IMG/VR virus record: IMGVR_UViG_3300027816_000052
Coordinates: 186,001-250,000 of that record
Strand: one strand, 5' to 3'
Length of the DNA stretch: 64,000 nucleotides
Each line of letters starts with the position of its first letter. Positions within the stretch are counted from its first letter, which is position 1. The position numbers were made by a program, and so were the translations under genes. Below the pieces are notes generated by a model, which was given only the letters and a program-made list of their open reading frames with translations, made no database searches and was not told the origin of the DNA. Shown here one piece after another: positions 48,901-60,137 of this stretch.

Positions 48901-49047
48901 ATGAAAAAATTAATTTTTGCACTTATTATTGTTATTTTTGCATCTTCCTGTGCATCACAAAGATGTCATGGTGTTGGAAACACAACACATGCACTTAAAG
49001 CGAAAAAGCAGCAACAACAAAGAACGTTTTCACAATTTCCTTTCTAA
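48901..49047 (+). CDS. Small lipoprotein (48 aa, not in the track)
   Basis: MKKLIFALIIVIFASSC lipobox; TAATG-coupled to the next gene. Confidence 0.65.
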   Translation: MKKLIFALIIVIFASSCASQRCHGVGNTTHALKAKKQQQQRTFSQFPF

Positions 49048-49622
49048 TGTTTAAACATAGTTTTTCATATTATTTTAGAAATACTTGGGAATTTATCCGA
49101 TGGGATATTCCAAGATTTTTTAAGAACATTTGGAGGTTCAGGAGAGAACTTAAATCCTTTGGTGGTTGGGACCGGTATTATACTATCTCAATGCTAAGAA
49201 GGTCTTTGATTACACAGAAAGAATCAATGGAAAAGTTCAGCAATGAATATGAACCAACACTTAGATTGAAACTTTATTATATGAAGAGAGCAATTTATTT
49301 AACGGATTGCATTCTCGAAGATAAATTTCATGATATGGCGGAAGCTAGACTTGGTTATAAAACAGTTTTTAGAGATTTTAAATTTGAACCAATTGAAGGT
49401 TCTACCAGTAAAAGATTGGTTTTTGATGAAGAAAGCGAAGAAGAAAGACAAGCGAACTGGAAAATTTTTGAGGAATCTTCAAAAATTGAGAAAGAAGTTT
49501 GGAATGAACTTTTTGATATTTTAAAAGGCGATATCTATAATGTTGATATGTATACCGAACATAAAGGTAAAGCATATGAAGATGTTCACAATGGTAAGGG
49601 TTTAATTAATTGGTGGTACTAA
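49047..49622 (+). CDS. Hypothetical protein
   Basis: 191-aa ORF. Confidence 0.65.
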   Translation: MFKHSFSYYFRNTWEFIRWDIPRFFKNIWRFRRELKSFGGWDRYYTISMLRRSLITQKESMEKFSNEYEPTLRLKLYYMKRAIYLTDCILEDKFHDMAEARLGYKTVFRDFKFEPIEGSTSKRLVFDEESEEERQANWKIFEESSKIEKEVWNELFDILKGDIYNVDMYTEHKGKAYEDVHNGKGLINWWY

Positions 49623-49634
49623 AAAAATAAAAAC

Positions 49635-49949
49635 ATGTCAGGAGGTTATTTTGATTATAAAAAATATCAACTTAATGATATCATTGATGATATTGAAAGA
49701 GTTTTAAATAGACAAGGAAAAGAAAGACCAAAAGAAGAACGTTGGTGTAGTGATGAATATCTTGAAAAATATCCAGAAGAAAAATATTATCCAACCTATT
49801 CAAAAGAAATTCAAGAAAAATTGCAAGAAGCAATTAAATCATTAACAATTGCAAGAATTTATGTACAAAGAGTTGATTGGTTTTTATCGGGTGATGATGG
49901 CGATGAATCATTCTTGAGAGAATTGTCTGAAGAATTGGATAAGGTATAG
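49635..49949 (+). CDS. Conserved phage hypothetical protein (MSGG family)
   Basis: MSGGYFDY...RVDWFLSGDDG. Confidence 0.65.
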   Translation: MSGGYFDYKKYQLNDIIDDIERVLNRQGKERPKEERWCSDEYLEKYPEEKYYPTYSKEIQEKLQEAIKSLTIARIYVQRVDWFLSGDDGDESFLRELSEELDKV

Positions 49950-49972
49950 ATATTTATTGAAAAATAAAAATC

Positions 49973-50236
49973 ATGAGTACTGAAATGAGAAAACTCATAA
50001 ATGAGTTTAATAACATTAACGAATCAAGTTTAAATAGAATATATAGTCATATTCAAAAATATGAATGCGCAATTATAACAGCGTTTAAAGGTAAGTTAAC
50101 TAACTGTAGAACCGAAAATGATAATGAAAAAAGAATATATATTAGACAGAACAAGGATAGAAATAAACTTTTAAAATCAGCTTTATTATTTTTTGGATAT
50201 CAAATTACAAAAGTAAAAGGTACTTATGTTGAATAA
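49973..50236 (+). pseudogene. Probably 3'-truncated late gene (ESSLNRIY...CAIITAF family)
   Basis: The frame stops at KGTYVE* exactly where a half attC-like site begins. Confidence 0.5.
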
Positions 50237-50274
50237 ACCACAAACCCGCCACTTGCATATACACGCTGTTATAA
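50232..50274 (+). repeat. Truncated attC-like site (right arm only)
   Basis: ATAAACCACAAACC...TATACACGCTGTTATAA resembles the right half of the 54977-55069 site. Confidence 0.65.
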
Positions 50275-50364
50275 GCAGGTGCGGTATTATAGCACAGAAC
50301 TTGATTTGAAAGACGAAACCTTTTTCTTTTCTTTTTGTGTGGTGGGAAAATAAAATTTAAAATA

Positions 50365-52338
50365 ATGAATAAAGTATTATTACCAAAAGAAGAAATTACA
50401 CAGAAGTTAGATAGAGATAAACTTACTTTATTGAACGCTTCTATCAAAGATTATGTGAACAACTTGTATGAAAATTCAAATGATGAATACATTATACAAG
50501 ATGGTGAACCATACGCCAATGGAGAATTACATTTGGGACATTTTTTAAACAAAACCTTGAAAGATTTTGTTGTAAAATATTACTTAACAAAAGGTAAGAA
50601 AGTTAGGGTTTCATTTGGTTGGGACTGTCATGGTTTACCCATTGAAAATAAAGCAAAAGAAATGAGTGGTGATTTAATTCAAAATGCTAAATTAGTCGCA
50701 ACCAAATATTGTGATATTCAAAATAAAACTCTTGAACTTTTCGGGATTTATCCAACTGAAGGTAGGTTTAAAACTATGGATATTGATTTTATAGAAAGAG
50801 AATTATATATATACCACCAACTACTAAATGCGGGTCTAATTCTTAAAAAGAATAAGCCTACTTGGTACTCACCAACATTAAAAACAGTATTGGCTAACTC
50901 AGAAATTGAATATAAAAAAATAGAAGATGAATCTTTGTATTTTCTATTCAACTCTGATAGTTTTAAATTACTTGTTTGGACAACAACAGAATGGACTGTA
51001 AACGGAAATCAGGCAGTATGTTTAAGTAATAATATAAAATATGTTAAAACTGTTGACAATATTATTTGTAGTGAAAGTTTTGCTATTGAAAATAATTTAG
51101 ATTATGATTTGTTTGATGTGAGTAATATTAAGTCATATCATAACCACAATGGAGATTTATGTCCAATTATTTATGATGACTACGTTTCAGATGATAAAAC
51201 AGGTATAGTACATCTTTGCGGTGGACACGGTGATGAAGATTATCGAATTTTAATGGATAATAACATAACCCCCAAAAATGTGTGCGATAAAATCGGCTTA
51301 TTAAAACACATAGAAGATTTTAAAATTGATGAAAAGTTTGTATATAAACGTGAAATTTACACACACGATTATCCAATTGATTGGCGTGAAGGGAATAAGG
51401 TGTATAAAGTATTAACGGAACAAACGTATCTTGATTTTGATTTAAACAAAATAAAGACTTGTTTAAAAGAAATAAAGTTATCATCAAAAGACAGAAATCG
51501 TTTATCAACGACAATATTTTCACGCAAAGATTGGTGTATTTCAAGACAAAGAAAATGGGGTGTTAAAATACCTAATAGTAATGATATATTGGATGTTTGG
51601 TTTGATAGTGGTTCTACATTTATGATGTATGATAAACCTGCCGATATATACATTGAAGGTTCAGACCAACACAGAGGGTGGTTTCAAAGTTCGATTATAT
51701 TAGCATCAATGATTGGTCGAGTACCAACAAAAAGAATAATAACACACGGATTTATTGTTGATAACACATTAGAAAAACTATCAAAATCAAAAGGTAATGG
51801 CGGAAGTTTGGAAAAGCTGTATGAAACATATAACCCTGATGTATTAAGACTATGGGTTTTACTGTCAGATTTTAAAAACGATATTGTCTTTTCGGAAGAT
51901 TCATTAAAAAACTCTGGTAAACAATATTTTAAAATAAGAAACTTTCTCCGTTATTTATTTAATAATCTATATATATATGATTATGATGAAACAAAAGTTG
52001 ATGAAAATATTTTTTTTAAAGTAAAAGAGTTGGAAAATAAATTTGATTTACTTGTCAATGAATTTGATTTGAATAAAGCAGTAAGGGGTTTTGTTGAATT
52101 TATAAACTATTATTCATCTTTGTTGACGGAGGATATTAAAAATGAATTTTATGAATCTGACACAAATTCCAATATGAGAATTAAATATGAAACAGAGTTT
52201 TACTATGTTTTAAAACACTTAAATAAACTACTTTTTTCGATTTTACCATTTCTTTCTATGGAAATAAAAAAAGCGTGGGAAGAAAAAAGAAAAGAAAAAG
52301 ATTTACATGTAGGGACTATATTTGGAAACGAGATGTAG
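50365..52338 (+). CDS. ileS: Minimal isoleucyl-tRNA synthetase (cassette 1)
   Basis: DGEPYANGELHLGH, GWDCHGLPIE, WTTTEWT, DWCISRQR, DVWFDSG, EGSDQHRGWFQS and KLSKS. Likely start at 50365 (657 aa). Confidence 0.9.
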   Translation: MNKVLLPKEEITQKLDRDKLTLLNASIKDYVNNLYENSNDEYIIQDGEPYANGELHLGHFLNKTLKDFVVKYYLTKGKKVRVSFGWDCHGLPIENKAKEMSGDLIQNAKLVATKYCDIQNKTLELFGIYPTEGRFKTMDIDFIERELYIYHQLLNAGLILKKNKPTWYSPTLKTVLANSEIEYKKIEDESLYFLFNSDSFKLLVWTTTEWTVNGNQAVCLSNNIKYVKTVDNIICSESFAIENNLDYDLFDVSNIKSYHNHNGDLCPIIYDDYVSDDKTGIVHLCGGHGDEDYRILMDNNITPKNVCDKIGLLKHIEDFKIDEKFVYKREIYTHDYPIDWREGNKVYKVLTEQTYLDFDLNKIKTCLKEIKLSSKDRNRLSTTIFSRKDWCISRQRKWGVKIPNSNDILDVWFDSGSTFMMYDKPADIYIEGSDQHRGWFQSSIILASMIGRVPTKRIITHGFIVDNTLEKLSKSKGNGGSLEKLYETYNPDVLRLWVLLSDFKNDIVFSEDSLKNSGKQYFKIRNFLRYLFNNLYIYDYDETKVDENIFFKVKELENKFDLLVNEFDLNKAVRGFVEFINYYSSLLTEDIKNEFYESDTNSNMRIKYETEFYYVLKHLNKLLFSILPFLSMEIKKAWEEKRKEKDLHVGTIFGNEM

Positions 52339-52345
52339 CACTTGC

Positions 52346-52465
52346 TTATAACGGTTGCAAATATAAAACGTTTTAAACTAAACTTAAATTGAAAAACAGT
52401 ATATAAATATAAACCAACAATAAATTTGGAACGCTGAAATAAATGTTTTATATTTGTTGTTATAA
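52346..52465 (+). repeat. attC-like hairpin (120 bp)
   Basis: TTATAAC-GGTTG-CAAATATAAAAC...GTTTTATATTTG-TT-GTTATAA. Confidence 0.85.
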
Positions 52466-52485
52466 ACACGTTAAATTATTTTATT

Positions 52486-52764
52486 ATGAAAACATATAAT
52501 GTAAAGTATGATGTTGGACAAGAAGTATATATACTTTTATCCAAAAAAATATTTAAAAGTAAAATTGAAAAGATTAGAATTGTTCATGGGGTACCTTATA
52601 TCAAAGGCGAAACAATGGAACAAATGGATGGAATTGAAATTGATTACTTGGTTGTAGTTAATGAACAATTCTATCCTTCAGGTGGACATTTATCTAGTTA
52701 TGATTGGTATAAACAGGATGATATTTTTTTGGATAAAGATGAACTGTTGCGGAAAATAATTTAA
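52486..52764 (+). CDS. Cassette 2 hypothetical protein
   Basis: ORF between the 52459 GTT and the 52775 AAC. Confidence 0.7.
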   Translation: MKTYNVKYDVGQEVYILLSKKIFKSKIEKIRIVHGVPYIKGETMEQMDGIEIDYLVVVNEQFYPSGGHLSSYDWYKQDDIFLDKDELLRKII

Positions 52765-52768
52765 TTGT

Positions 52769-52822
52769 TTATAACGTCTGATGATAAACAATCGTTTTAA
52801 TGTGTTTTATTTGCTGTTATAA
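52769..52822 (+). repeat. attC-like hairpin (54 bp)
   Basis: TTATAAC-GTCTGATGATAAACAATCG...GTTATAA; near-copy of 57404-57457. Confidence 0.8.
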
Positions 52823-52846
52823 GTATGTAATTTACAATTTATACCT

Positions 52847-53092
52847 ATGAAAAAAACGAAAAGAAAAATACATATTGGAAATGACCTATGGTTTTATTGG
52901 GTTGGTTCTGGTAGATGGGGTGAGGTAACTCATGTAACGATATGTTCACCAGATGAACAATATTATAAAATAGATGCAAGTGATGTTGCAAGTAGTGAAA
53001 TGTATGTTGGTGCGGAAGGGTCATTTCCAACACAAATATTACCGTCAAAAGTTAAAGAATATATTGAAAATAAAATAATAAATAAATTTTAA
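52847..53092 (+). CDS. Cassette 3 hypothetical protein
   Basis: ORF between hairpins. Confidence 0.7.
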   Translation: MKKTKRKIHIGNDLWFYWVGSGRWGEVTHVTICSPDEQYYKIDASDVASSEMYVGAEGSFPTQILPSKVKEYIENKIINKF

Positions 53093-53100
53093 ATTATTAC

Positions 53101-53195
53101 TTATAACGGTTGGGTGTATGAGAAGGTTTGCTTAGATGAACTTTCAAATTAACCACTGAACTTTATAGCAAACTTTCTTATACACCTTGTTATGT
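53101..53195 (+). repeat. attC-like hairpin (95 bp)
   Basis: GGTGTATGAGAAGGTTTGCT / AGCAAACTTTCTTATACACC stem. Confidence 0.88.
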
Positions 53196-53263
53196 GTAGG
53201 TGTGGTTAATTAAGGTAGAATGTTAAATAGTAGAAATGAACAAAAATTTTAAAAGAAAAATAT

Positions 53264-53674
53264 ATGAATTATAAACAAAAAATTACAACTATCAATTATT
53301 TTGAAAAGGTGGTTAAAATTTCTCTAACAAGAGAAGAGTGGAATTCATCTGGAACTTGGGTAGAGTCAATGATGAAAAAAGGTTGTGAAAGACTGAGTAA
53401 GGATTGGTTTGAAGATTTACATCACTTAGTTATGCGACCAATAAGTGACGAAATAAACTTTTCTGGTAAAAACTATACTTATGATGTGGATATAACATTT
53501 GATATACCAAGAGAATTACTGAGAATGTTTGTATATTCAATCGGTCAAATTGCTTATGATTTTGATGTTAAAGGTATAACTTCGGTTACTGCTCAAAATA
53601 TAGTGGGAAAAATAAACAAACAATTAAAAGAACAACTACCAAATGATGATAAATGGTTTCATTATGGATTTTGA
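53264..53674 (+). CDS. Cassette 4 hypothetical protein
   Basis: ORF between hairpins. Confidence 0.7.
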   Translation: MNYKQKITTINYFEKVVKISLTREEWNSSGTWVESMMKKGCERLSKDWFEDLHHLVMRPISDEINFSGKNYTYDVDITFDIPRELLRMFVYSIGQIAYDFDVKGITSVTAQNIVGKINKQLKEQLPNDDKWFHYGF

Positions 53675-53732
53675 TTTTTCTTTTAAAATTTTCAACCGAA
53701 ATGTTGATTAGAACGATGAACGGAACGCTTAC

Positions 53733-54208
53733 ACATAACGTATATCGGCTAAACGCAGTATTTAAAAACTTTTGCGAGGGAAATAATTAATCAATTAAAT
53801 AATAATAATTAAAAACAAAAAGTAAAATGGAAATCAAAACAAAATTTGACGTAAACAATTTGGTGAAAAGAAAATTCGACACCAATTCAAAGAACCAGAT
53901 GAGTGCTTTGGAAGTAATGGAAGTGATTGCACAAACTTGCTATGCAGGAACGCAGGTATTTTATTTGTGCAAACATGTAATTGCTCAAAAGGAATTTGTA
54001 GAAAAGTATTCTGAAAAAGGAGAATTTACTTGGGTGATTGCTCACAGTATTTCACAAGAAGAAAATCAGGCAGGATGGAGAAAATACCGTGAAGATGAAT
54101 TGATAGAAGCACCAAAAGAAGTGATTGACATTATACTTGGTAATTCTTAATTGTTCAATTGTGCGGTGGGAAAGTTTTTAAATATTGTCGTTTTAGCCGT
54201 TGTTATGC
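53733..54208 (+). repeat. attC-like hairpin with a gene in its loop (476 bp)
   Basis: CGGCTAAACGCAGTATTTAAAAACTTT pairs with AAAGTTTTTAAATATTGTCGTTTTAGCCG. Confidence 0.8.
53827..54150 (+). CDS. Hypothetical protein inside the attC-like loop
   Basis: 107-aa ORF with an A-rich leader. Confidence 0.7.
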   Translation: MEIKTKFDVNNLVKRKFDTNSKNQMSALEVMEVIAQTCYAGTQVFYLCKHVIAQKEFVEKYSEKGEFTWVIAHSISQEENQAGWRKYREDELIEAPKEVIDIILGNS

Positions 54209-54273
54209 GAAGGTGTGGCAACTCCAAAATTTCAAATTATAGACAAAACTTTCTTGCCACACTTTTGCATAAC
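54202..54273 (+). mobile_element. Empty cassette body (cassette 5, 72 bp)
   Basis: GTTATGCGAAGGTGTGGCAA...TTGCCACACTTTTGCATAAC with no ORF between. Confidence 0.8.
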
Positions 54274-54351
54274 GGTTGTAAATATGAGAAGTAAATTTTA
54301 CCTATAAAAATTAGATAAATCAAAATTTATTTCTTATATTTGTTGTTATAA
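54267..54351 (+). repeat. attC-like hairpin (85 bp)
   Basis: AAATATGAGAAGTAAATTTT / AAAATTTATTTCTTATATTT stem. Confidence 0.85.
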
Positions 54352-54382
54352 GTATGTAAAACAAACTAAATAATAATTAAAT

Positions 54383-54613
54383 ATGAAAATTGAAGGTCAA
54401 ATTACGCTAGATGGTATATTATATACACTGTTTATTTTATTCTGTTTATTTTTAACAATAGGTAGTTCTATTAGTGGGTGGTGGTATTTATCACACTTTG
54501 GATTCAGTGTAAAACAATTTTTGGTAAATATTTTAGTTTCGTCTTCAACTTTATTTATGATCTGGATGATTTTCACTAAAATATTTATTATAAAAATAAA
54601 CAGAATAAAGTAG
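54383..54613 (+). CDS. Cassette 6 small membrane protein (2 TM)
   Basis: Two hydrophobic helices. Confidence 0.7.
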   Translation: MKIEGQITLDGILYTLFILFCLFLTIGSSISGWWYLSHFGFSVKQFLVNILVSSSTLFMIWMIFTKIFIIKINRIK

Positions 54614-54626
54614 TTTGTTTTATTAC

Positions 54627-54757
54627 TTATAACGGTTGAGTATAACCGAAGGTGGGGATTAGAAGTGCCGAACCCTGACTTACCTACAAAAGTAAATTAG
54701 AAGCACAATATCTGAATGTTGGAACTACACCCCACTTTTGGTTATACTTTGTTAGGT
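54627..54757 (+). repeat. attC-like hairpin (131 bp)
   Basis: AGTATAACCGAAGGTGGGG / CCCCACTTTTGGTTATACT stem. Confidence 0.88.
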
Positions 54758-54777
54758 GTATGTAAATTTTACGGATT

Positions 54778-54966
54778 ATGAAAGATATACAACTGTTAAT
54801 TGATATGAAAGTTTCTTTAGGTAGGGAAACATTATTATTTCAGATACTTGGTAAGTATGGTGATAAAATACCAATGGAACTTCAAGAAGAACTACGAAAA
54901 TTGGCAGAAGAAGAAAGAAACTTTGGTGAAATGAAGAAACGAACTTTGAAGGGTGTGTTGGAGTAA
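54778..54966 (+). CDS. Cassette 7 hypothetical protein
   Basis: 62-aa ORF between hairpins. Confidence 0.65.
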   Translation: MKDIQLLIDMKVSLGRETLLFQILGKYGDKIPMELQEELRKLAEEERNFGEMKKRTLKGVLE

Positions 54967-54976
54967 AATTTATTAC

Positions 54977-55069
54977 ACCTAACGGTTGGGTGTATGAAAC
55001 GTAGCCACGCACAATACTTAATATAAACCACAGACCTTAATTGGCTATGTTTTATACACGATGTTAGCA
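54977..55069 (+). repeat. attC-like hairpin (93 bp)
   Basis: GTGTATGAAACGTAGCCA / TGGCTATGTTTTATACAC stem. Confidence 0.88.
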
Positions 55070-55175
55070 GTAGTACGGATTTAAACTACAAATGCTCATT
55101 CGGAGAACTGAACCTTTTTCTTTTCTTTTTTGTGGGTTGGACAAAATAAATTTGAAAAATTTAAAAATAAATAAT

Positions 55176-55409
55176 ATGAAATTAGAAACAATTGTAAAAG
55201 TTACACCAGATGGTGGAGTTGAAATTCCTTCTGATATGAAAGTTGGAACTGGATTGATGAATATGGTAAAAGAATTACGTGATAATGAATGGAGAACATT
55301 TGAACATCACGATAATTGGATTAAAAACGAACATTATCCAAATCCAACATTTGAACAACAATTTGATACAGGTAATGCTTATAAAGAAATGTTAAAAACT
55401 AAAATTTAA
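55176..55409 (+). CDS. Cassette 8 ORF a
   Basis: Likely start at 55176; the track's start at 55092 lies in the cassette flank. Confidence 0.6.
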   Translation: MKLETIVKVTPDGGVEIPSDMKVGTGLMNMVKELRDNEWRTFEHHDNWIKNEHYPNPTFEQQFDTGNAYKEMLKTKI

Positions 55410-55413
55410 AACT

Positions 55414-56013
55414 ATGATGAAAATTGAAGCAAAAAAAGACGGTAAAGGAAACATTGTAATATCGGAAGATTCCTTTGAAATGATACTGGCTTGTTTAGAT
55501 AATCAAAAATTTGTTGGTGAACAGCCACAAAATGGTGATTCGCTTTCGGTAGGCGAAGACAACTATTGGAAAGGACAAGAAGATATTCAAAACACTATTG
55601 ACCATTATAATAGAGAATGTAGAAAAATATTACATCAAAAATATGTTTTAAGAACAGAATCTGATGGTTATTTTCTTGCTAAAAAATATGAACATCAAAC
55701 AGAAGATACTGAATGGACTGGTGAAGATGTTGGATTAGTGTATGAACTATTCAAAGATACAAGAATAATTTATAATGAAACAAGAGATTTATTACCATTA
55801 GATGGTAGTGAAGAAATTAAGGAAGGAAGTACTCCAATTGGTAAAACAAAAGATGGGTGGATTGCAGTTGAACAAGAATCAAGACCTTGGTTAATTGAAA
55901 GAGCATTGGGATATGATGGTGATTATTTAACAATTTCTGAAGATGGCAGTAAGAATAGACCTTGGAAACAAGATGAAATTCGAAAAATTATAAACATATT
56001 TAATAATAAATAA
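55414..56013 (+). CDS. Cassette 8 ORF b
   Basis: 199-aa ORF. Confidence 0.7.
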   Translation: MMKIEAKKDGKGNIVISEDSFEMILACLDNQKFVGEQPQNGDSLSVGEDNYWKGQEDIQNTIDHYNRECRKILHQKYVLRTESDGYFLAKKYEHQTEDTEWTGEDVGLVYELFKDTRIIYNETRDLLPLDGSEEIKEGSTPIGKTKDGWIAVEQESRPWLIERALGYDGDYLTISEDGSKNRPWKQDEIRKIINIFNNK

Positions 56014-56014
56014 A

Positions 56015-56422
56015 ATGGGAATATTTGATTGTTTAATAGATAAAGACAATGGAAAACCAAAATCTGATATGGAATATATTTACAGATTAGATATGGTTTG
56101 GATACCTAACAAACTTGAAAGTAAACCAATTAAAATTGGAACGATAATGAATAATGTTATTCAACGAGATAATGGCAGTTATGAATTTACTTGTAAAGAA
56201 ACTGGTGAAAGATTACAAGCAACTTATTCTTGGGCTTTGGCTGAAAACACACCAGAAAATGTTGAAAGAATAAAAATATATGATGATGAATATTTAAAAT
56301 TCAAAGAATACGAAAGAAAAATAAATTCTTTGAGAAATAATATTATTACTCTTAAAGAGCGTGGAGAAAAAAGAAAAGAAAAAGATATTGCAGATGAAAC
56401 TCAAATCGGAGAACAAATGTAG
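56015..56422 (+). CDS. Cassette 8 ORF c
   Basis: 135 aa; the C-terminus reads through the cassette 3' flank. Confidence 0.7.
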   Translation: MGIFDCLIDKDNGKPKSDMEYIYRLDMVWIPNKLESKPIKIGTIMNNVIQRDNGSYEFTCKETGERLQATYSWALAENTPENVERIKIYDDEYLKFKEYERKINSLRNNIITLKERGEKRKEKDIADETQIGEQM

Positions 56423-56428
56423 TATTAC

Positions 56429-56487
56429 ACATAACGGTTCGGCGGGTTGCCGTTGTGCATTCAATAACGGCAACCCGACTGTTATGC
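56429..56487 (+). repeat. attC-like hairpin (59 bp)
   Basis: CGGGTTGCCGTT / AACGGCAACCCG perfect stem. Confidence 0.88.
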
Positions 56488-56527
56488 GGGGTCATTCTTT
56501 TTCACTCGGTAAAAAGCAAAAGGTACA

Positions 56528-56830
56528 ATGGCAAAAAGGAAGTTAGGCCCATCGAGCGGCAAGTGCTCCAAGTGCGGAGGTCACATCAGCATCAATCCAC
56601 CAAGACCGTGCCGCCGCTGCTCAGGCGAAAAGCCTCAGGCGAGCTCGGAAAAGAAAGAGCGCGTGTTCACCGAGAGCGAGGTGAAGGCGATGGTGCGAGA
56701 GATTCTCGCAGAACAGGAACGACTGCATATAAGCGATGGATCCGGAGGACACGATATTGTGTGGGCGGTCGGGATCGGAGAGGTCGAGGCGGTGTTTAAA
56801 GCGCACGGCATTGTTCTCGATCCCGCATAA
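56528..56830 (+). CDS. Cassette 9 GC-rich zinc-ribbon protein
   Basis: CSKC...CRRC; the stop codon TAA lies inside the GCATAAC core. Confidence 0.7.
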   Translation: MAKRKLGPSSGKCSKCGGHISINPPRPCRRCSGEKPQASSEKKERVFTESEVKAMVREILAEQERLHISDGSGGHDIVWAVGIGEVEAVFKAHGIVLDPA

Positions 56831-56954
56831 CGGTTGACGGTATGAAAAGTTGGGGATTAAAAGATATAAACTTTCGCACCGATACAATGATAATTAATAG
56901 TACAAACCTTCGGGAACGCACACACGCCCCAATTTTTTATACCGTGTGTTATGC
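56825..56954 (+). repeat. attC-like hairpin (130 bp)
   Basis: ACGGTATGAAAAGTTGGGG / CCCCAATTTTTTATACCGT stem. Confidence 0.88.
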
Positions 56955-56975
56955 CCCGTTTTTATCCAATTTTTT

Positions 56976-57398
56976 ATGTTACAAGACGAATTAGCATTAC
57001 AATATAAATACAAAAAACTTCCATCAGAATTATCTGACAAGGTAAGAAACCAATATTTGTCTGAAATACCAAAATGTTTGAATATCAATGGTGATTCTGA
57101 ATTTGAGTTAAAAACAGCAAACGGTACAATAATTTCAAAAGGATATGAAAGAATTGTAATTGGAGATTATGGAGCGTTTATTGAATTTAACAGAAATCAA
57201 GTTATTGACGAAAATATTTGTATTCAAAAGGGGCAAGAATATAGAATTAACGATGAAAAATATAGTAAGAATGTGAAATATTTTTGGTTGACTGCAAAAG
57301 ATTCATCGTGTATAAAGATATATTTACAACAGAAAACGGTATCATACGCAGATTATAAACCAAATATGTATTACGTGTCTCCATTTGAGGTTTTTTAA
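56976..57398 (+). CDS. Cassette 10 hypothetical protein
   Basis: GYERIVIGDYGAFIEF; likely start at 56976. Confidence 0.7.
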   Translation: MLQDELALQYKYKKLPSELSDKVRNQYLSEIPKCLNINGDSEFELKTANGTIISKGYERIVIGDYGAFIEFNRNQVIDENICIQKGQEYRINDEKYSKNVKYFWLTAKDSSCIKIYLQQKTVSYADYKPNMYYVSPFEVF

Positions 57399-57403
57399 AT
57401 GGG

Positions 57404-57457
57404 GAATAACGTCCGATGATAAACAATCGTTTTAATGTTGTTTATCATTTGTTATGT
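57404..57457 (+). repeat. attC-like hairpin (54 bp)
   Basis: ATGATAAACA / TGTTTATCAT stem. Confidence 0.85.
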
Positions 57458-57536
57458 GTAGGTGTGGATTATTAAGGTGGAATGTTTAATCGGAGAACTG
57501 AACAAAAATTTTAAAAGAAAAATTAATATATAGATT

Positions 57537-57761
57537 ATGGGAAACATAGTTAAAAAATTTGAAAACTTTAAAGATGGGTTATACGTCACATGTAAAAACG
57601 CACCAGAAGATAATTACCAACTTCATAATAAAAAGGATTATTTGGTTATTAAATATGATAACCAACCGTATGGTGTTGGACGAGTAACTATATTTAACCC
57701 TTCAAGTAGAAAGGAAGAAACATATCCTAAAACTATGTTTAGTGAACCATTTAACAAATAA
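57537..57761 (+). CDS. Cassette 11 hypothetical protein
   Basis: 74-aa ORF. Confidence 0.65.
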   Translation: MGNIVKKFENFKDGLYVTCKNAPEDNYQLHNKKDYLVIKYDNQPYGVGRVTIFNPSSRKEETYPKTMFSEPFNK

Positions 57762-57819
57762 TTTTTCTTTTAAAATTTTAAACATAGATGTTGATTAGAA
57801 CGATGGGTGGAACACTTAC

Positions 57820-57952
57820 ACATAACGTTTCGCAGCTTGGCGAGGTGCGGGATTTACAGCACTAAAGACGATTAGAATTACAAATTTTTAAATAAAAAAC
57901 AATATGTCAAACGAAGTACAAAACCCCGCATCTTGCCAAACTGCTGTTATAT
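57820..57952 (+). repeat. attC-like hairpin (133 bp) containing the start codon of the next gene
   Basis: GCAGCTTGGCGAGGTGCGGG / CCCGCATCTTGCCAAACTGC stem; ATG at 57904. Confidence 0.88.
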
Positions 57953-58185
57953 GCCGCCTTTTTGATTTGGGAAGGAAAGGGTTAACATGGGATTGGTCAA
58001 AATTGGAACTGAAAAAACAATACTTTATCAGTCGTGAAGATGTTTTGAATATGAATATGCTTTGGCAACTTGCACAAGGTGGTATAACTGAACAAGCACA
58101 ATCTTTGAATGCAGAAGTATTGATTTGGGAAGATGTCATAAAAAACGGATGGTACTTGTTGCTGAGACCGCAAGGTGGCATATAA
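57904..58185 (+). CDS. Cassette 12 protein starting within the upstream hairpin
   Basis: The first ~15 codons (MSNEVQNPASCQTAV) are hairpin sequence. Confidence 0.65.
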   Translation: MSNEVQNPASCQTAVICRLFDLGRKGLTWDWSKLELKKQYFISREDVLNMNMLWQLAQGGITEQAQSLNAEVLIWEDVIKNGWYLLLRPQGGI

Positions 58186-58313
58186 CGGTTTGCGTATTGC
58201 TGACGTTGCCAATTTGAAACACAAATGTTGAATTAAAAACAAAAAAATAAATATGAAAATCAGAGTTGAAGTTAAAGACGAAGCTGGCAATGTTCAGCAA
58301 TACGTTGTTAGGC
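58180..58313 (+). repeat. attC-like hairpin (134 bp) containing the start codon of the next gene
   Basis: CGTATTGCTGACGTTGCCA / TGGCAATGTTCAGCAATACG stem; ATG at 58253. Confidence 0.88.
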
Positions 58314-58471
58314 GCAGTTACTTGGTCAAATTTGTTGACCCGAAGAAAGAGTATCCTGTTACCTACACAATTAAACACGATGGCACAAGAGTAAATGAAC
58401 CTGCAATGCTCAAAGGCGAAGATTTAACCGAAAATCAAATTGCACAACTTTTCTCGAAGGGTTTGTTGTAA
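58253..58471 (+). CDS. Cassette 13 protein starting within the upstream hairpin
   Basis: The first ~19 codons (MKIRVEVKDEAGNVQQYVV) are hairpin sequence. Confidence 0.65.
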   Translation: MKIRVEVKDEAGNVQQYVVRRSYLVKFVDPKKEYPVTYTIKHDGTRVNEPAMLKGEDLTENQIAQLFSKGLL

Positions 58472-58475
58472 TTGC

Positions 58476-58570
58476 GCCTAACGATTGGGTGTATATGTAG
58501 TTTTTTATTTGGAAATGTCAAAACTTATTCGTACCTTTGTAAAAAAAATTACATATACACCTTGTTATGT
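58476..58570 (+). repeat. attC-like hairpin (95 bp) with a promoter in its loop
   Basis: GGTGTATATGTAGTTTTTT / AAAAAATTACATATACACC stem. Confidence 0.88.
58508..58539 (+). promoter_or_regulatory. Bacteroidota housekeeping-type promoter inside the attC-like loop
   Basis: TTTG-N20-TACCTTTG. Confidence 0.75.
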
Positions 58571-58601
58571 ATAGTTTATTCACAAATTAAAATAAAAGTT
58601 T

Positions 58602-58808
58602 ATGAAACAACCAAAAATTAAAATAACCGACATTCACGGTAAAGACTGGGGTATTAAAAAAGTAAAAACACTTCATTGGAATTTGGACGGAAAATTAAAC
58701 ACAATTCAAGTTGATTTTTCTGGAACTATGGATATGTATGATTTAGATGATGAAGGCGTTTTTACTAATCCACATGGTAATATGAAAGGCGTTATCATTT
58801 GGGAATAA
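58602..58808 (+). CDS. Cassette 14 hypothetical protein
   Basis: 68-aa ORF. Confidence 0.65.
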   Translation: MKQPKIKITDIHGKDWGIKKVKTLHWNLDGKLNTIQVDFSGTMDMYDLDDEGVFTNPHGNMKGVIIWE

Positions 58809-58813
58809 ATTAT

Positions 58814-58866
58814 ACATAACTAGTATATATAAGTAAGTATAATCTAACCACTTAAAAATAAAGGAC
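58814..58866 (+). other. Candidate attI-like half-site between the last cassette and the recombinase
   Basis: ACATAAC is followed by TAGTATATATAAGTAAG rather than by a hairpin; no partner GTT arm. Confidence 0.5.
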
Positions 58867-59667
58867 TTGAATAATAAAATTATTAAGATTTGTGAAGAAA
58901 AGTTTATATATTTAAACTATTCACCAAGAACAAAAGATAATTATCTTTCACATATAAAAAATTTCTTAAATCACATTGGTAGTAAACAAGTAATACATTG
59001 TAATGCTCAAGATTTTCAATCCTATTTAGATAATTATAAATTCACTTCAACAGCACAACAAAACCAAATCATTAACGCAATAAGATTTCTCTACAAATTT
59101 GGTCTTAATAAAAAATATGATAAAATATCGTTTAAAAGACCTAAATCTGAGAAGAAACTACCAAAAGTAATTGATTCAAATTCAATCATTGATAAATTAA
59201 ATAAGATTGATAATCTCAAACACAAAGCAATTCTCACCTTAACTTTTTCAGTTGGTCTACGAGTCTCAGAAATAATTAATCTTAAAATAGAGGATATTGA
59301 TTCCAAGCGAATGTTAATCCACATTAAGAACGCAAAAGGAAGAAAAGATAGAGTTGTTCCATTATCTCAAAATGTATTAAGACTATTAAGAACTTATTAT
59401 AAAAATTATATCCCAAAGGAATATCTCTTCAATGGACAAAACAGTACTAAATATTCAATAGGTAGTTGTCAGAAAATATACAAAAAATATATTGAATCTG
59501 ATGGACATATACACACACTTAGACACAGTTTTGCAACATCCTTATTAGAAAATGGAACAGATTTAAGAATTATTCAAAAAATTCTTGGTCATTCAAATGT
59601 TAAAACCACAGAAATATACACACACGTTTCAAATCAAATTTTGAACAAAATTAATTTGCCAGTTTGA
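58867..59667 (+). CDS. Compact tyrosine recombinase (integron-integrase-like, lacking the IntI insertion)
   Basis: SAM-like N-terminus YSPRTKDNY, GLRVSE (R), AKGRKDR (K), HTLRHSFAT (HxxR), LGH and TEIYTH (Y). TTG start. Confidence 0.92.
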   Translation: MNNKIIKICEEKFIYLNYSPRTKDNYLSHIKNFLNHIGSKQVIHCNAQDFQSYLDNYKFTSTAQQNQIINAIRFLYKFGLNKKYDKISFKRPKSEKKLPKVIDSNSIIDKLNKIDNLKHKAILTLTFSVGLRVSEIINLKIEDIDSKRMLIHIKNAKGRKDRVVPLSQNVLRLLRTYYKNYIPKEYLFNGQNSTKYSIGSCQKIYKKYIESDGHIHTLRHSFATSLLENGTDLRIIQKILGHSNVKTTEIYTHVSNQILNKINLPV

Positions 59668-59686
59668 AAAGTTTTAGTTATCTTTG
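59655..59686 (+). promoter_or_regulatory. Bacteroidota-type promoter
   Basis: TTTG-N20-TATCTTTG upstream of 59702. Confidence 0.8.
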
Positions 59687-59701
59687 TCAAAAATAACAAA
59701 A

Positions 59702-59983
59702 ATGAAAAAAGAAGTTTTTGAAATTATCATCTGGAATGATACATTTGGAAAAGTGGTTGATGAAAGATTTGTTGATGAAACACAATTTTCGATTTTTTTG
59801 AAAGCGATTAAGGGTTGCTTGGATACAACACAAGATTTTAGTTATTTTAATGGAAAAAACTTTTTAATCCACATTCCTTTTGCAGTTTTGAAAAATAGCG
59901 TTATCTTTACCAAAGAAAATGAAATTGGTGTAAGTGAAATCATTAAATCAAAAGCTGAAGCTCTAACAACTAAAACAAAATAA
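59702..59983 (+). CDS. Hypothetical protein
   Basis: ATG at 59702, downstream of a promoter. Confidence 0.65.
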   Translation: MKKEVFEIIIWNDTFGKVVDERFVDETQFSIFLKAIKGCLDTTQDFSYFNGKNFLIHIPFAVLKNSVIFTKENEIGVSEIIKSKAEALTTKTK

Positions 59984-59987
59984 TAAA

Positions 59988-60137
59988 ATGGGAAAACTTT
60001 TCAAAATCATTCTTGGTGTTATTTTGGTATACATTGGCGGAAAAATGGTTTACAACAATGTAAAAGGTAAAAAAGATGAAGAATTTAATTTTAATGATTT
60101 TAAAGACTTGAAAGCAATTAAAGATATTGAATTTTAA
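59988..60137 (+). CDS. Small single-TM protein (49 aa, not in the track)
   Basis: MGKLFKIILGVILVYIGGKMV... Confidence 0.55.
   Translation: MGKLFKIILGVILVYIGGKMVYNNVKGKKDEEFNFNDFKDLKAIKDIEF

Follow-up and report, generated by a model that had tools for sequence, protein, structure and literature searches.

Hairpin sites of a phage cassette array that hold the predicted start codons of their own genes

How can a recombination site that is constrained by its folded DNA structure also serve as the beginning of a protein-coding gene, and to which gene does it then belong? This question is raised by an integron-like array of small gene cassettes in an uncultured freshwater jumbo phage (IMG/VR virus record IMGVR_UViG_3300027816_000052, 256 kb), of which a stretch of 64,000 nucleotides, record bases 186001–250000 and hereafter called the window, was analyzed. 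A preliminary description made from the sequence alone had noted that two open reading frames (ORFs), at 57904 and 58253, start in the loops of their upstream hairpins after A-rich leaders and read through the right arm and the GTT core. It proposed that the site doubles as a translation-initiation module, so that shuffling could create or break fusion proteins. Direct reading of the sequence and folding of both sites as DNA show that what was described is indeed there: two imperfect hairpins with arms of about 20 bp and loops of about 70 nt carry the ATGs in their loops, and the core GTT is an in-frame valine codon in each ORF (..CQTAV before ICRL.. in ORF12 and ..QQYVV before RRSY.. in ORF13). 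The next in-frame ATGs are codon 50 in ORF12 and codon 52 in ORF13, close to the earlier estimates of about 48 and about 54. The proposed interpretation is only partly supported, since the site does appear to act as an initiation and N-terminal module whereas the expected consequence of shuffling is not supported, as described below. The coordinates of the features are collected in Table 1, where a slash in a motif marks the inferred crossover point or, in the cassette 12 row, the end of the unit.

Table 1. Features of the recombinase-proximal part of the cassette array (window coordinates)
Feature	Position	Strand	Description	Supporting observation
Cassette array	52348..58820	+	13 cassettes (S2–S14), each a hairpin site followed by its ORF(s); crossover points at the C of each left box: 52352, 52775, 53107, 53739, 54273, 54633, 54983, 56435, 56831, 57410, 57826, 58186, 58482 and 58820	In 10 of 13 cassettes the right box is perfectly complementary over 10 nt to the cassette's own 3' end
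Hairpin site S12	57822..57950	+	129 nt; left box ATAAC 57822–57826, unpaired spacer of about 5 nt, 5' arm about 57832–57851, A-rich loop with the ATG at 57904, 3' arm about 57925–57944, right box GTTAT 57946–57950	DNA folding: + strand -18.6, - strand -16.4 kcal/mol
Cassette 12	57826..58185	+	Inferred mobile unit, 360 nt: S12 plus ORF12; 3' end GCATATAA/C	3' end complementary to its own right box GTTATATGC
ORF12	57904..58185	+	93 aa; residues 1–7 encoded in the loop, 8–14 in the 3' arm, V15 is the GTT core, conserved body follows; stop codon TAA (58183–58185) inside the terminal ATAAC box	14 homologues, conserved body, hypervariable N-terminus
Hairpin site S13	58182..58311	+	130 nt; left box ATAAC 58182–58186, loop with the ATG at 58253, one extra T on the 3' arm, right box GTTAG 58307–58311	DNA folding: + strand -18.2, - strand -13.9 kcal/mol
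Cassette 13	58186..58481	+	Mobile unit, 296 nt: S13 plus ORF13	Same block (92% identity) in four other loci, limited by TAAC/G on the left and CCTAAC/G on the right
ORF13	58253..58471	+	72 aa; about residues 1–10 encoded in the loop, 11–18 in the 3' arm, V19 is the GTT core; conserved body starts at RRSYLVKFVDP	One body, at least 5 unrelated N-termini
Cassette 14	58478..58819	+	91-nt site (58478–58568); ORF 58602–58808 starts after the hairpin; cassette nearest the recombinase	
attI-like end of the array	58816..58835	+	Lone left box ATAAC followed by TAGTATATATA, 47 nt upstream of the recombinase start	TAAC plus TAtTATATATA invariant or nearly so in 17 diverse loci
Tyrosine recombinase	58867..59667	+	266 aa, XerA/XerC type, presumed cassette recombinase	Phage_integrase, E 1.9e-37

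In the whole 256-kb genome, sites of this type occur only between 52348 and 58568 of the window and only on the + strand. The 13 sites are 50–472 nt long with invariant TAAC and GTTA boxes and paired arms, and they agree with the R''/R' boxes (RYYYAAC/GTTRRRY) of integron attC sites, although in many of them the fifth base of the right box is T rather than a purine. A general repeat search missed S12 and S13 because their arms have a mismatch every few bases. Profile searches of 12 of the cassette ORFs, ORF12 and ORF13 included, against Pfam, NCBIfam and PHROGs gave no significant match, and an Rfam search of 49000–60000 found nothing. The presumed recombinase scores highest with the model of archaeal XerA (XerA_Arch, 195 bits) and reaches 161 bits with the NCBIfam integron integrase model (cut-off 265), both below cut-off. 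It is closest to archaeal XerA and to XerC/D. Its best solved match is P. abyssi XerA (4a8e), with which it aligns end to end, whereas its alignment to VchIntIA (2a3v) covers IntI residues 17–177 and 260–308 and it has 35 residues where IntI has 83, so that about 48 residues corresponding to the integron-specific insert are lacking. The Xer-like sequence does not place the locus with Xer/dif chromosome-dimer resolution, in which a single duplex dif site of about 28 bp is acted on by XerC/D or XerA, since here the recombinase is linked to an array of 13 hairpin sites and an attI-like site. Its relatives in cellular genomes are almost all from Bacteroidota, and no close relative was found in cultured phages, the nearest at 41% identity being in phages that infect Cellulophaga and Polaribacter. 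A Bacteroidota host is therefore likely.

The system is conserved beyond this phage. Eighty IMG/VR loci (the compared loci are designated by L and a number) encode recombinases 55–100% identical to this one, and most of those with enough upstream sequence carry arrays of the same kind of site upstream on the same strand, with site lengths clustering near 48, 88, 125 and 200 nt. In 17 diverse loci that were aligned, the TAAC followed by TAtTATATATA lies 45–55 nt before the recombinase start while the sequence to its left is variable, which is the behavior of an attI site at the insertion end of an array.

Is the start codon in the loop more than chance? In 76 non-duplicate related loci, 92 of 145 hairpins of 100–140 nt and 12 of 24 hairpins longer than 140 nt have a loop ATG whose ORF runs at least 30 codons past the core, against only 13 of 179 hairpins of 45–100 nt (63% of long sites against 7% of short ones), and GTT is in frame 0 relative to the ATG in 77 of the 104 cases among the long sites. 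The loop ATGs carry the same upstream signature as ordinary cassette start codons, with 72–80% A at -11 to -13, A at -3 in 69%, T at -1 and few G, and internal in-frame ATGs lack it. In many cassettes the hairpin site in front of the gene holds its predicted start codon and first 15–20 codons. In the window only cassettes 12 and 13 show the feature, and one further site, S5, holds a whole ORF in its loop.

It might be argued that the upstream extension is an annotation artefact, with translation really starting inside the cassette body at a non-ATG or later ATG, or with these small ORFs not being expressed and the open frame through the arm arising by chance. In support of this view, the evidence for translation is indirect, the variable columns of three N-terminal peptide families are distributed over the codon positions as 28:24:32 without third-position excess, so that no protein-level selection on the peptides is claimed, and ORF12 residues 1–14 are predicted to be disordered (pLDDT below 50). 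ORF13 residues 2–20 are modelled as a beta-hairpin at pLDDT 70–74. Against it stand the frequency and signature of the loop ATGs, and also the pattern of conservation in both protein families. The ORF12 family (14 representatives) is conserved from the residue after the core, V being followed by ICRLSDLGRKGLTWDW, whereas the 13–23 residues before the core vary in sequence and length. The ORF13 family (25 representatives, 23 of them aligned) is conserved from RRSYLVKFVDP, also directly after the core V, and carries at least five unrelated N-termini of 8 to about 50 residues. In every one of the 14 and 23 aligned members the frame stays open from an upstream ATG although the N-terminal sequence is hypervariable. 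In L091 and L093 these N-termini are again encoded by hairpin loops and arms, and L089 keeps the extension although no hairpin is left there. Because conservation begins 33–35 codons before the next ATG, initiation must lie at or upstream of the core. Moreover, contigs from freshwater metatranscriptome libraries span 57427–58056 and 58036–58410, crossing both hairpins, with depths of 3.6–12 over the cassettes and 205 over the recombinase gene. Such uneven depth argues for RNA, although the contigs have no strand information and DNA carry-over cannot be excluded. We thus consider the artefact reading unlikely.

Which side of the hairpin, then, belongs to the gene? We first read the array as a canonical integron, with each hairpin belonging to the upstream cassette, as the preliminary description seemed to imply, but box complementarity fits both orientations and could not decide between them, and the limits of cassettes that recur in different arrays did. 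Blocks shared at 92–100% identity between different arrays begin at the left box (at TAACG) and end at the next left box (at TAAC). For example, L004:583–1542 equals L017:2634–3593, a cassette that is internal in L004 and terminal, next to the recombinase, in L017 and L018. Cassette 13 itself (window 58181–58483) recurs in L083 and L085–L087 with exactly these limits and with different neighbors on both sides. When two sites share only their downstream flank, the hairpin is shared in 15 of 25 pairs, and when they share only the upstream flank it is shared in 1 of 15, though the pairs are not all independent. The two strands also fold unequally, the + strand being more stable in 161 of 169 long sites and 165 of 179 short sites (326 of 348 in total); the spacers are asymmetric (about 5 nt against about 2 nt) and S13 has its one extra base on the 3' arm, while no conserved extrahelical bases, through which integrons choose the one folded strand that is recombined, were established. 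In 233 of 254 cassettes the main ORF is on the strand on which the site precedes it, pointing towards the recombinase gene.

Taken together, we are fairly confident in the following scenario. Each cassette consists of an imperfect hairpin site (TAAC, about 5 unpaired nt, stem, variable loop, stem, about 2 nt, GTTA) followed by its ORF on the same strand, and the XerA/XerC-like recombinase encoded just past the attI-like site is inferred to cut the folded + strand at the 5' box (TAA/C), so that cassettes would be excised and inserted as hairpin plus downstream ORF. In integron terms the genes sit on the bottom strand behind their own attC-like site. Because the site lies in the 5' leader of each gene, the long class of sites (about 115–200 nt) would have taken the translation-initiation region into its unpaired A-rich loop, with the 3' arm and the GTT core being translated as the first 14–27 or more residues, and this peptide would be shaped by the DNA structure rather than by protein function, a by-product that the proteins tolerate. 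The anatomy of the sites, the limits of the shared units, the conservation of the open frame and the start-site signature are established by the sequence comparisons, whereas recombination itself, its chemistry and strand, and the actual use of the loop ATG in translation remain inferences. Some observations weigh against this scenario. Circle-junction patterns for cassettes 12 and 13 were not found in assembled metagenome contigs, the recombinase lacks the domain with which integron integrases read extrahelical bases, and the link between hairpin and body is not absolute, as ten flank-sharing pairs have different hairpins.

The alternative, in which the hairpin is the 3' attC of the upstream cassette, the crossover is at G/TT of the right box and each excision or insertion couples a start-bearing site to a new start-less body, deserves consideration because hairpin and body have been re-paired over longer times. 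The search for unrelated proteins that share these N-termini, which had been suggested beforehand as a check, was positive. A hairpin 84% identical to S13 sits in front of an unrelated body at L025:770–903, where its 19-residue peptide (..DEAGNVQQYVV) is joined at GTT, the window having MKIRVEVKDEAGNVQQYVV before RRSY.. and L025 having MEYKVQITDEAGNVQQYVV before SRSS... Families such as ..NLNISDV and ..KKLHISDV, ending at the core, head many different bodies. A translated comparison of cassette bodies, with positional filters since it was otherwise swamped by overlaps with neighboring cassettes, showed one pair of homologous bodies (L040 and L056) with unrelated hairpins. The at least five N-termini of the ORF13 family and the frame-0 bias, which would keep fusions in frame, point the same way, although the bias can also come from common descent of hairpin families. 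Nevertheless, the recent, recognizable mobility events all keep the hairpin with its ORF, the array ends next to the recombinase with a lone left box, and the strand whose 5' box is the left box is the better folder, so that this model appears improbable and routine shuffling should neither create nor break these fusions. Re-pairing at the GTT core is seen only as an older and rarer process, for which cassette genesis on existing hairpins, gene conversion or rare recombination of the other strand are possible routes that the data do not distinguish. One speculative and rather unlikely possibility that would be of considerable interest is that the long hairpins are exchangeable start modules. 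Besides the usual crossover at the left box, the recombinase would occasionally recombine the other strand at the right box (G/TTA), swapping the loop-encoded initiation region and N-terminal peptide between bodies while the shared frame-0 convention at GTT keeps such fusions in frame. That would make a second, combinatorial level of shuffling in a phage integron, including the attachment of lipoprotein-like signal peptides to new bodies.

It has also to be considered that the hairpins are not site-specific recombination sites at all but regulatory stem-loops or mRNA stabilizers, with cassettes exchanged by homologous recombination between them, as in the PeSL promoter/stem-loop cassettes of T4-type phages (PMC2839356, PMC4122927). 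There, too, small ORFan genes in a variable region of a large phage genome are each flanked by a conserved stem-loop module and shuffled between relatives, and here the hairpins lie in 5' leaders, their loops share A-rich motifs, and the similarity of hairpin families between cassettes would give homology for exchange. However, PeSLs are early sigma-70 promoter plus terminator motifs exchanged without a dedicated recombinase, whereas here neither signal is in excess (42 promoter-like hits against 38 expected and 1 terminator-like hit against 2.5 expected). The block limits fall within the 4-nt TAAC box and are not spread over the homologous stems, each cassette has its own 9–10-nt box complementary to its own far end, the recombinase and the attI-like site are conserved in the 17 aligned loci, and related recombinases in Bacteroidota chromosomes sit beside arrays of the same site type. 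This reading is thus unlikely, though a secondary role of the hairpin in the mRNA is not excluded.

Compared with bacterial integrons (IntI, attI and attC cassette arrays), the locus has a tyrosine recombinase gene next to an attI-like site at one end of an array of small ORFan cassettes, imperfect hairpin sites of variable length (50–200 nt) with outer AAC/GTT boxes and unequal folding of the two strands, cassettes whose own ends complete their boxes, and an inferred crossover that falls in the conserved AA/C (equivalent to G/TT). It differs in its short Xer-like recombinase without the IntI-specific insert, in the asymmetric spacers, in its jumbo phage host, in sites that often contain the start codon and N-terminal codons, and in the orientation of the ORFs, which in integrons lie upstream of their own attC on the top strand and are transcribed from Pc, whereas here a Pc-type promoter at attI cannot drive them. 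Start signals within recombination sites are already known from ORF-11 and ORF-18 in attI1 and from short ORFs inside attC sites of class 1 integrons (PMC8876359), where a translation-initiation region and start codon serve the cassette gene downstream and the ORF can run across the core site. In these cases, however, the start lies in a different unit from the gene (attI or the preceding cassette's attC) and mostly works by translational coupling, whereas here the inferred crossover lies upstream of the loop ATG, the start is on the same mobile unit and fused in frame to the gene, and the pattern is systematic. Clusters of attC sites lacking an integrase (CALINs) have been reported in phage genomes, including a phage of the Bacteroidota host Polaribacter (Qi et al., 2023; PMC9892861). 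These 17 clusters, found with standard attC models, need contain as few as two predicted sites (the one described in detail has three) and have no associated recombinase, and the terms jumbo, Xer and start codon do not occur in that paper. We found no description of a jumbo-phage array with a Xer-like recombinase and sites in front of the genes in the literature library searched, which is not proof of novelty.

If this scenario holds, integron-type cassette capture would exist in large virulent-type phages, run by a short Xer-like recombinase that lacks the integron-specific domain, and standard integron finders would report such a locus at most as an orphan attC cluster. A structured DNA recombination site could then be placed in front of genes and be translated, so that constraints on DNA structure write the first 15–25 residues of many proteins, and gene callers and users of these phage proteins should be aware that the N-termini are site-derived. 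The hundreds of natural hairpin-body pairs also offer a means to ask how cassettes acquire their sites, a question still open for integrons. In this context, a brief comparison with Bacteroidota chromosomes showed that the related recombinases of Niabella ginsengisoli (L171) and of a MAG (L116), which are 41–48% identical, sit beside arrays of the same site type (TAAC/CAAC, spacer, stem .. stem, GTT) with box complementarity from site to site. Their cassettes are larger and their ORFs lie on the opposite strand, the canonical integron orientation, in which no loop start codons are expected.

The loop of site S5 holds a whole ORF of 107 aa, and the cassette “body” that follows its right box is only a 66-nt hairpin, so that loops can hold anything from a leader to a complete gene. 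In the case of ORF12, the TAA stop codon lies inside the terminal ATAAC box of its cassette, and therefore this ORF spans from the loop of its own site to the last bases before the crossover. Cassettes S4 and S11 share a leader of about 85 nt and a trailer of about 65 nt around unrelated ORFs; the leader and trailer contain a perfect 19–21-nt inverted repeat (AAAATTTTAAAAGAAAAA..), and the same leader occurs in other phages (loci L018, L035, L036, L048, and L054). The G+C content of cassette S9 is 55%, against 21–38% for the other cassettes, which suggests a recent foreign origin for its 100-aa ORF. Cassette S8 holds three ORFs and its right box matches its 3′ end at only 6 of 9 positions; it may be a fusion of cassettes after loss of sites. 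A gene for a 667-aa class I aminoacyl-tRNA-synthetase-like protein is bounded by GTTATAAGC and its complement GCTTATAAC, and may be the first and largest cassette of the array, with a degenerate site.

Positions of the cassette features in the window and in related loci (L, locus or contig handle)
Feature	Location	Position
Cassette S5	Window	53735-54272
S5, ORF inside the loop	Window	53827-54150
S5, arms	Window	about 53745-53772 and 54171-54200
S5, body after the right box	Window	54207-54272
Leader and trailer shared by cassettes S4 and S11	Window	53189-53261 with 53674-53738; 57451-57525 with 57759-57825
Cassette S9	Window	56435-56830
S9, ORF	Window	56528-56830
Region of the aminoacyl-tRNA-synthetase-like gene	Window	50268-52352
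Aminoacyl-tRNA-synthetase-like gene	Window	50335-52338
GTTATAAGC	Window	50268
GCTTATAAC	Window	52344-52352
Cassette S8	Window	54983-56434
S8, three ORFs	Window	about 55177-55409, 55414-56013, 56015-56422
Stop codon of ORF12	Window	58183-58185
Region noted for metatranscriptome depth	Window	58836-59000
Bacterial array, Niabella ginsengisoli	L171	156-4250
Bacterial array, Bacteroidota MAG	L116	6772-9093
Region of the replaced left arm of the cassette-13 hairpin	L082	1106-1492
Region of the replaced left arm of the cassette-13 hairpin	L084	402-788
Loop-ATG ORF with lipoprotein-like signal peptide	L057	7670
Loop-ATG ORF with lipoprotein-like signal peptide	L011	371
Loop-ATG ORF with lipoprotein-like signal peptide	L054	1621
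Loop-ATG ORF with lipoprotein-like signal peptide	L074	6017

In two contigs (L082 and L084), the left arm of the cassette-13 hairpin is replaced by sequence encoding a 128-aa ORF with an IS605 OrfB-type HTH domain, while ORF13 and its loop ATG are intact. Several loop-ATG ORFs in which the core is in frame 2 begin with lipoprotein-like signal peptides (for example ..AMLVAVIFCGC), and the hydrophobic core of the peptide is encoded by the 3′ arm of the hairpin. Arrays of the same site type, with box complementarity from site to site, are also carried by the bacterial chromosomes of N. ginsengisoli and a Bacteroidota MAG that encode recombinases of 41–48% identity, however their ORFs are on the opposite strand, which is the canonical integron orientation. 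This points to a Bacteroidota integron family with short Xer-like integrases. As for the recombinase gene in the window, its assembled depth in a freshwater metatranscriptome library (X10) is about 205, whereas the depth over the cassettes is 3.6–12.
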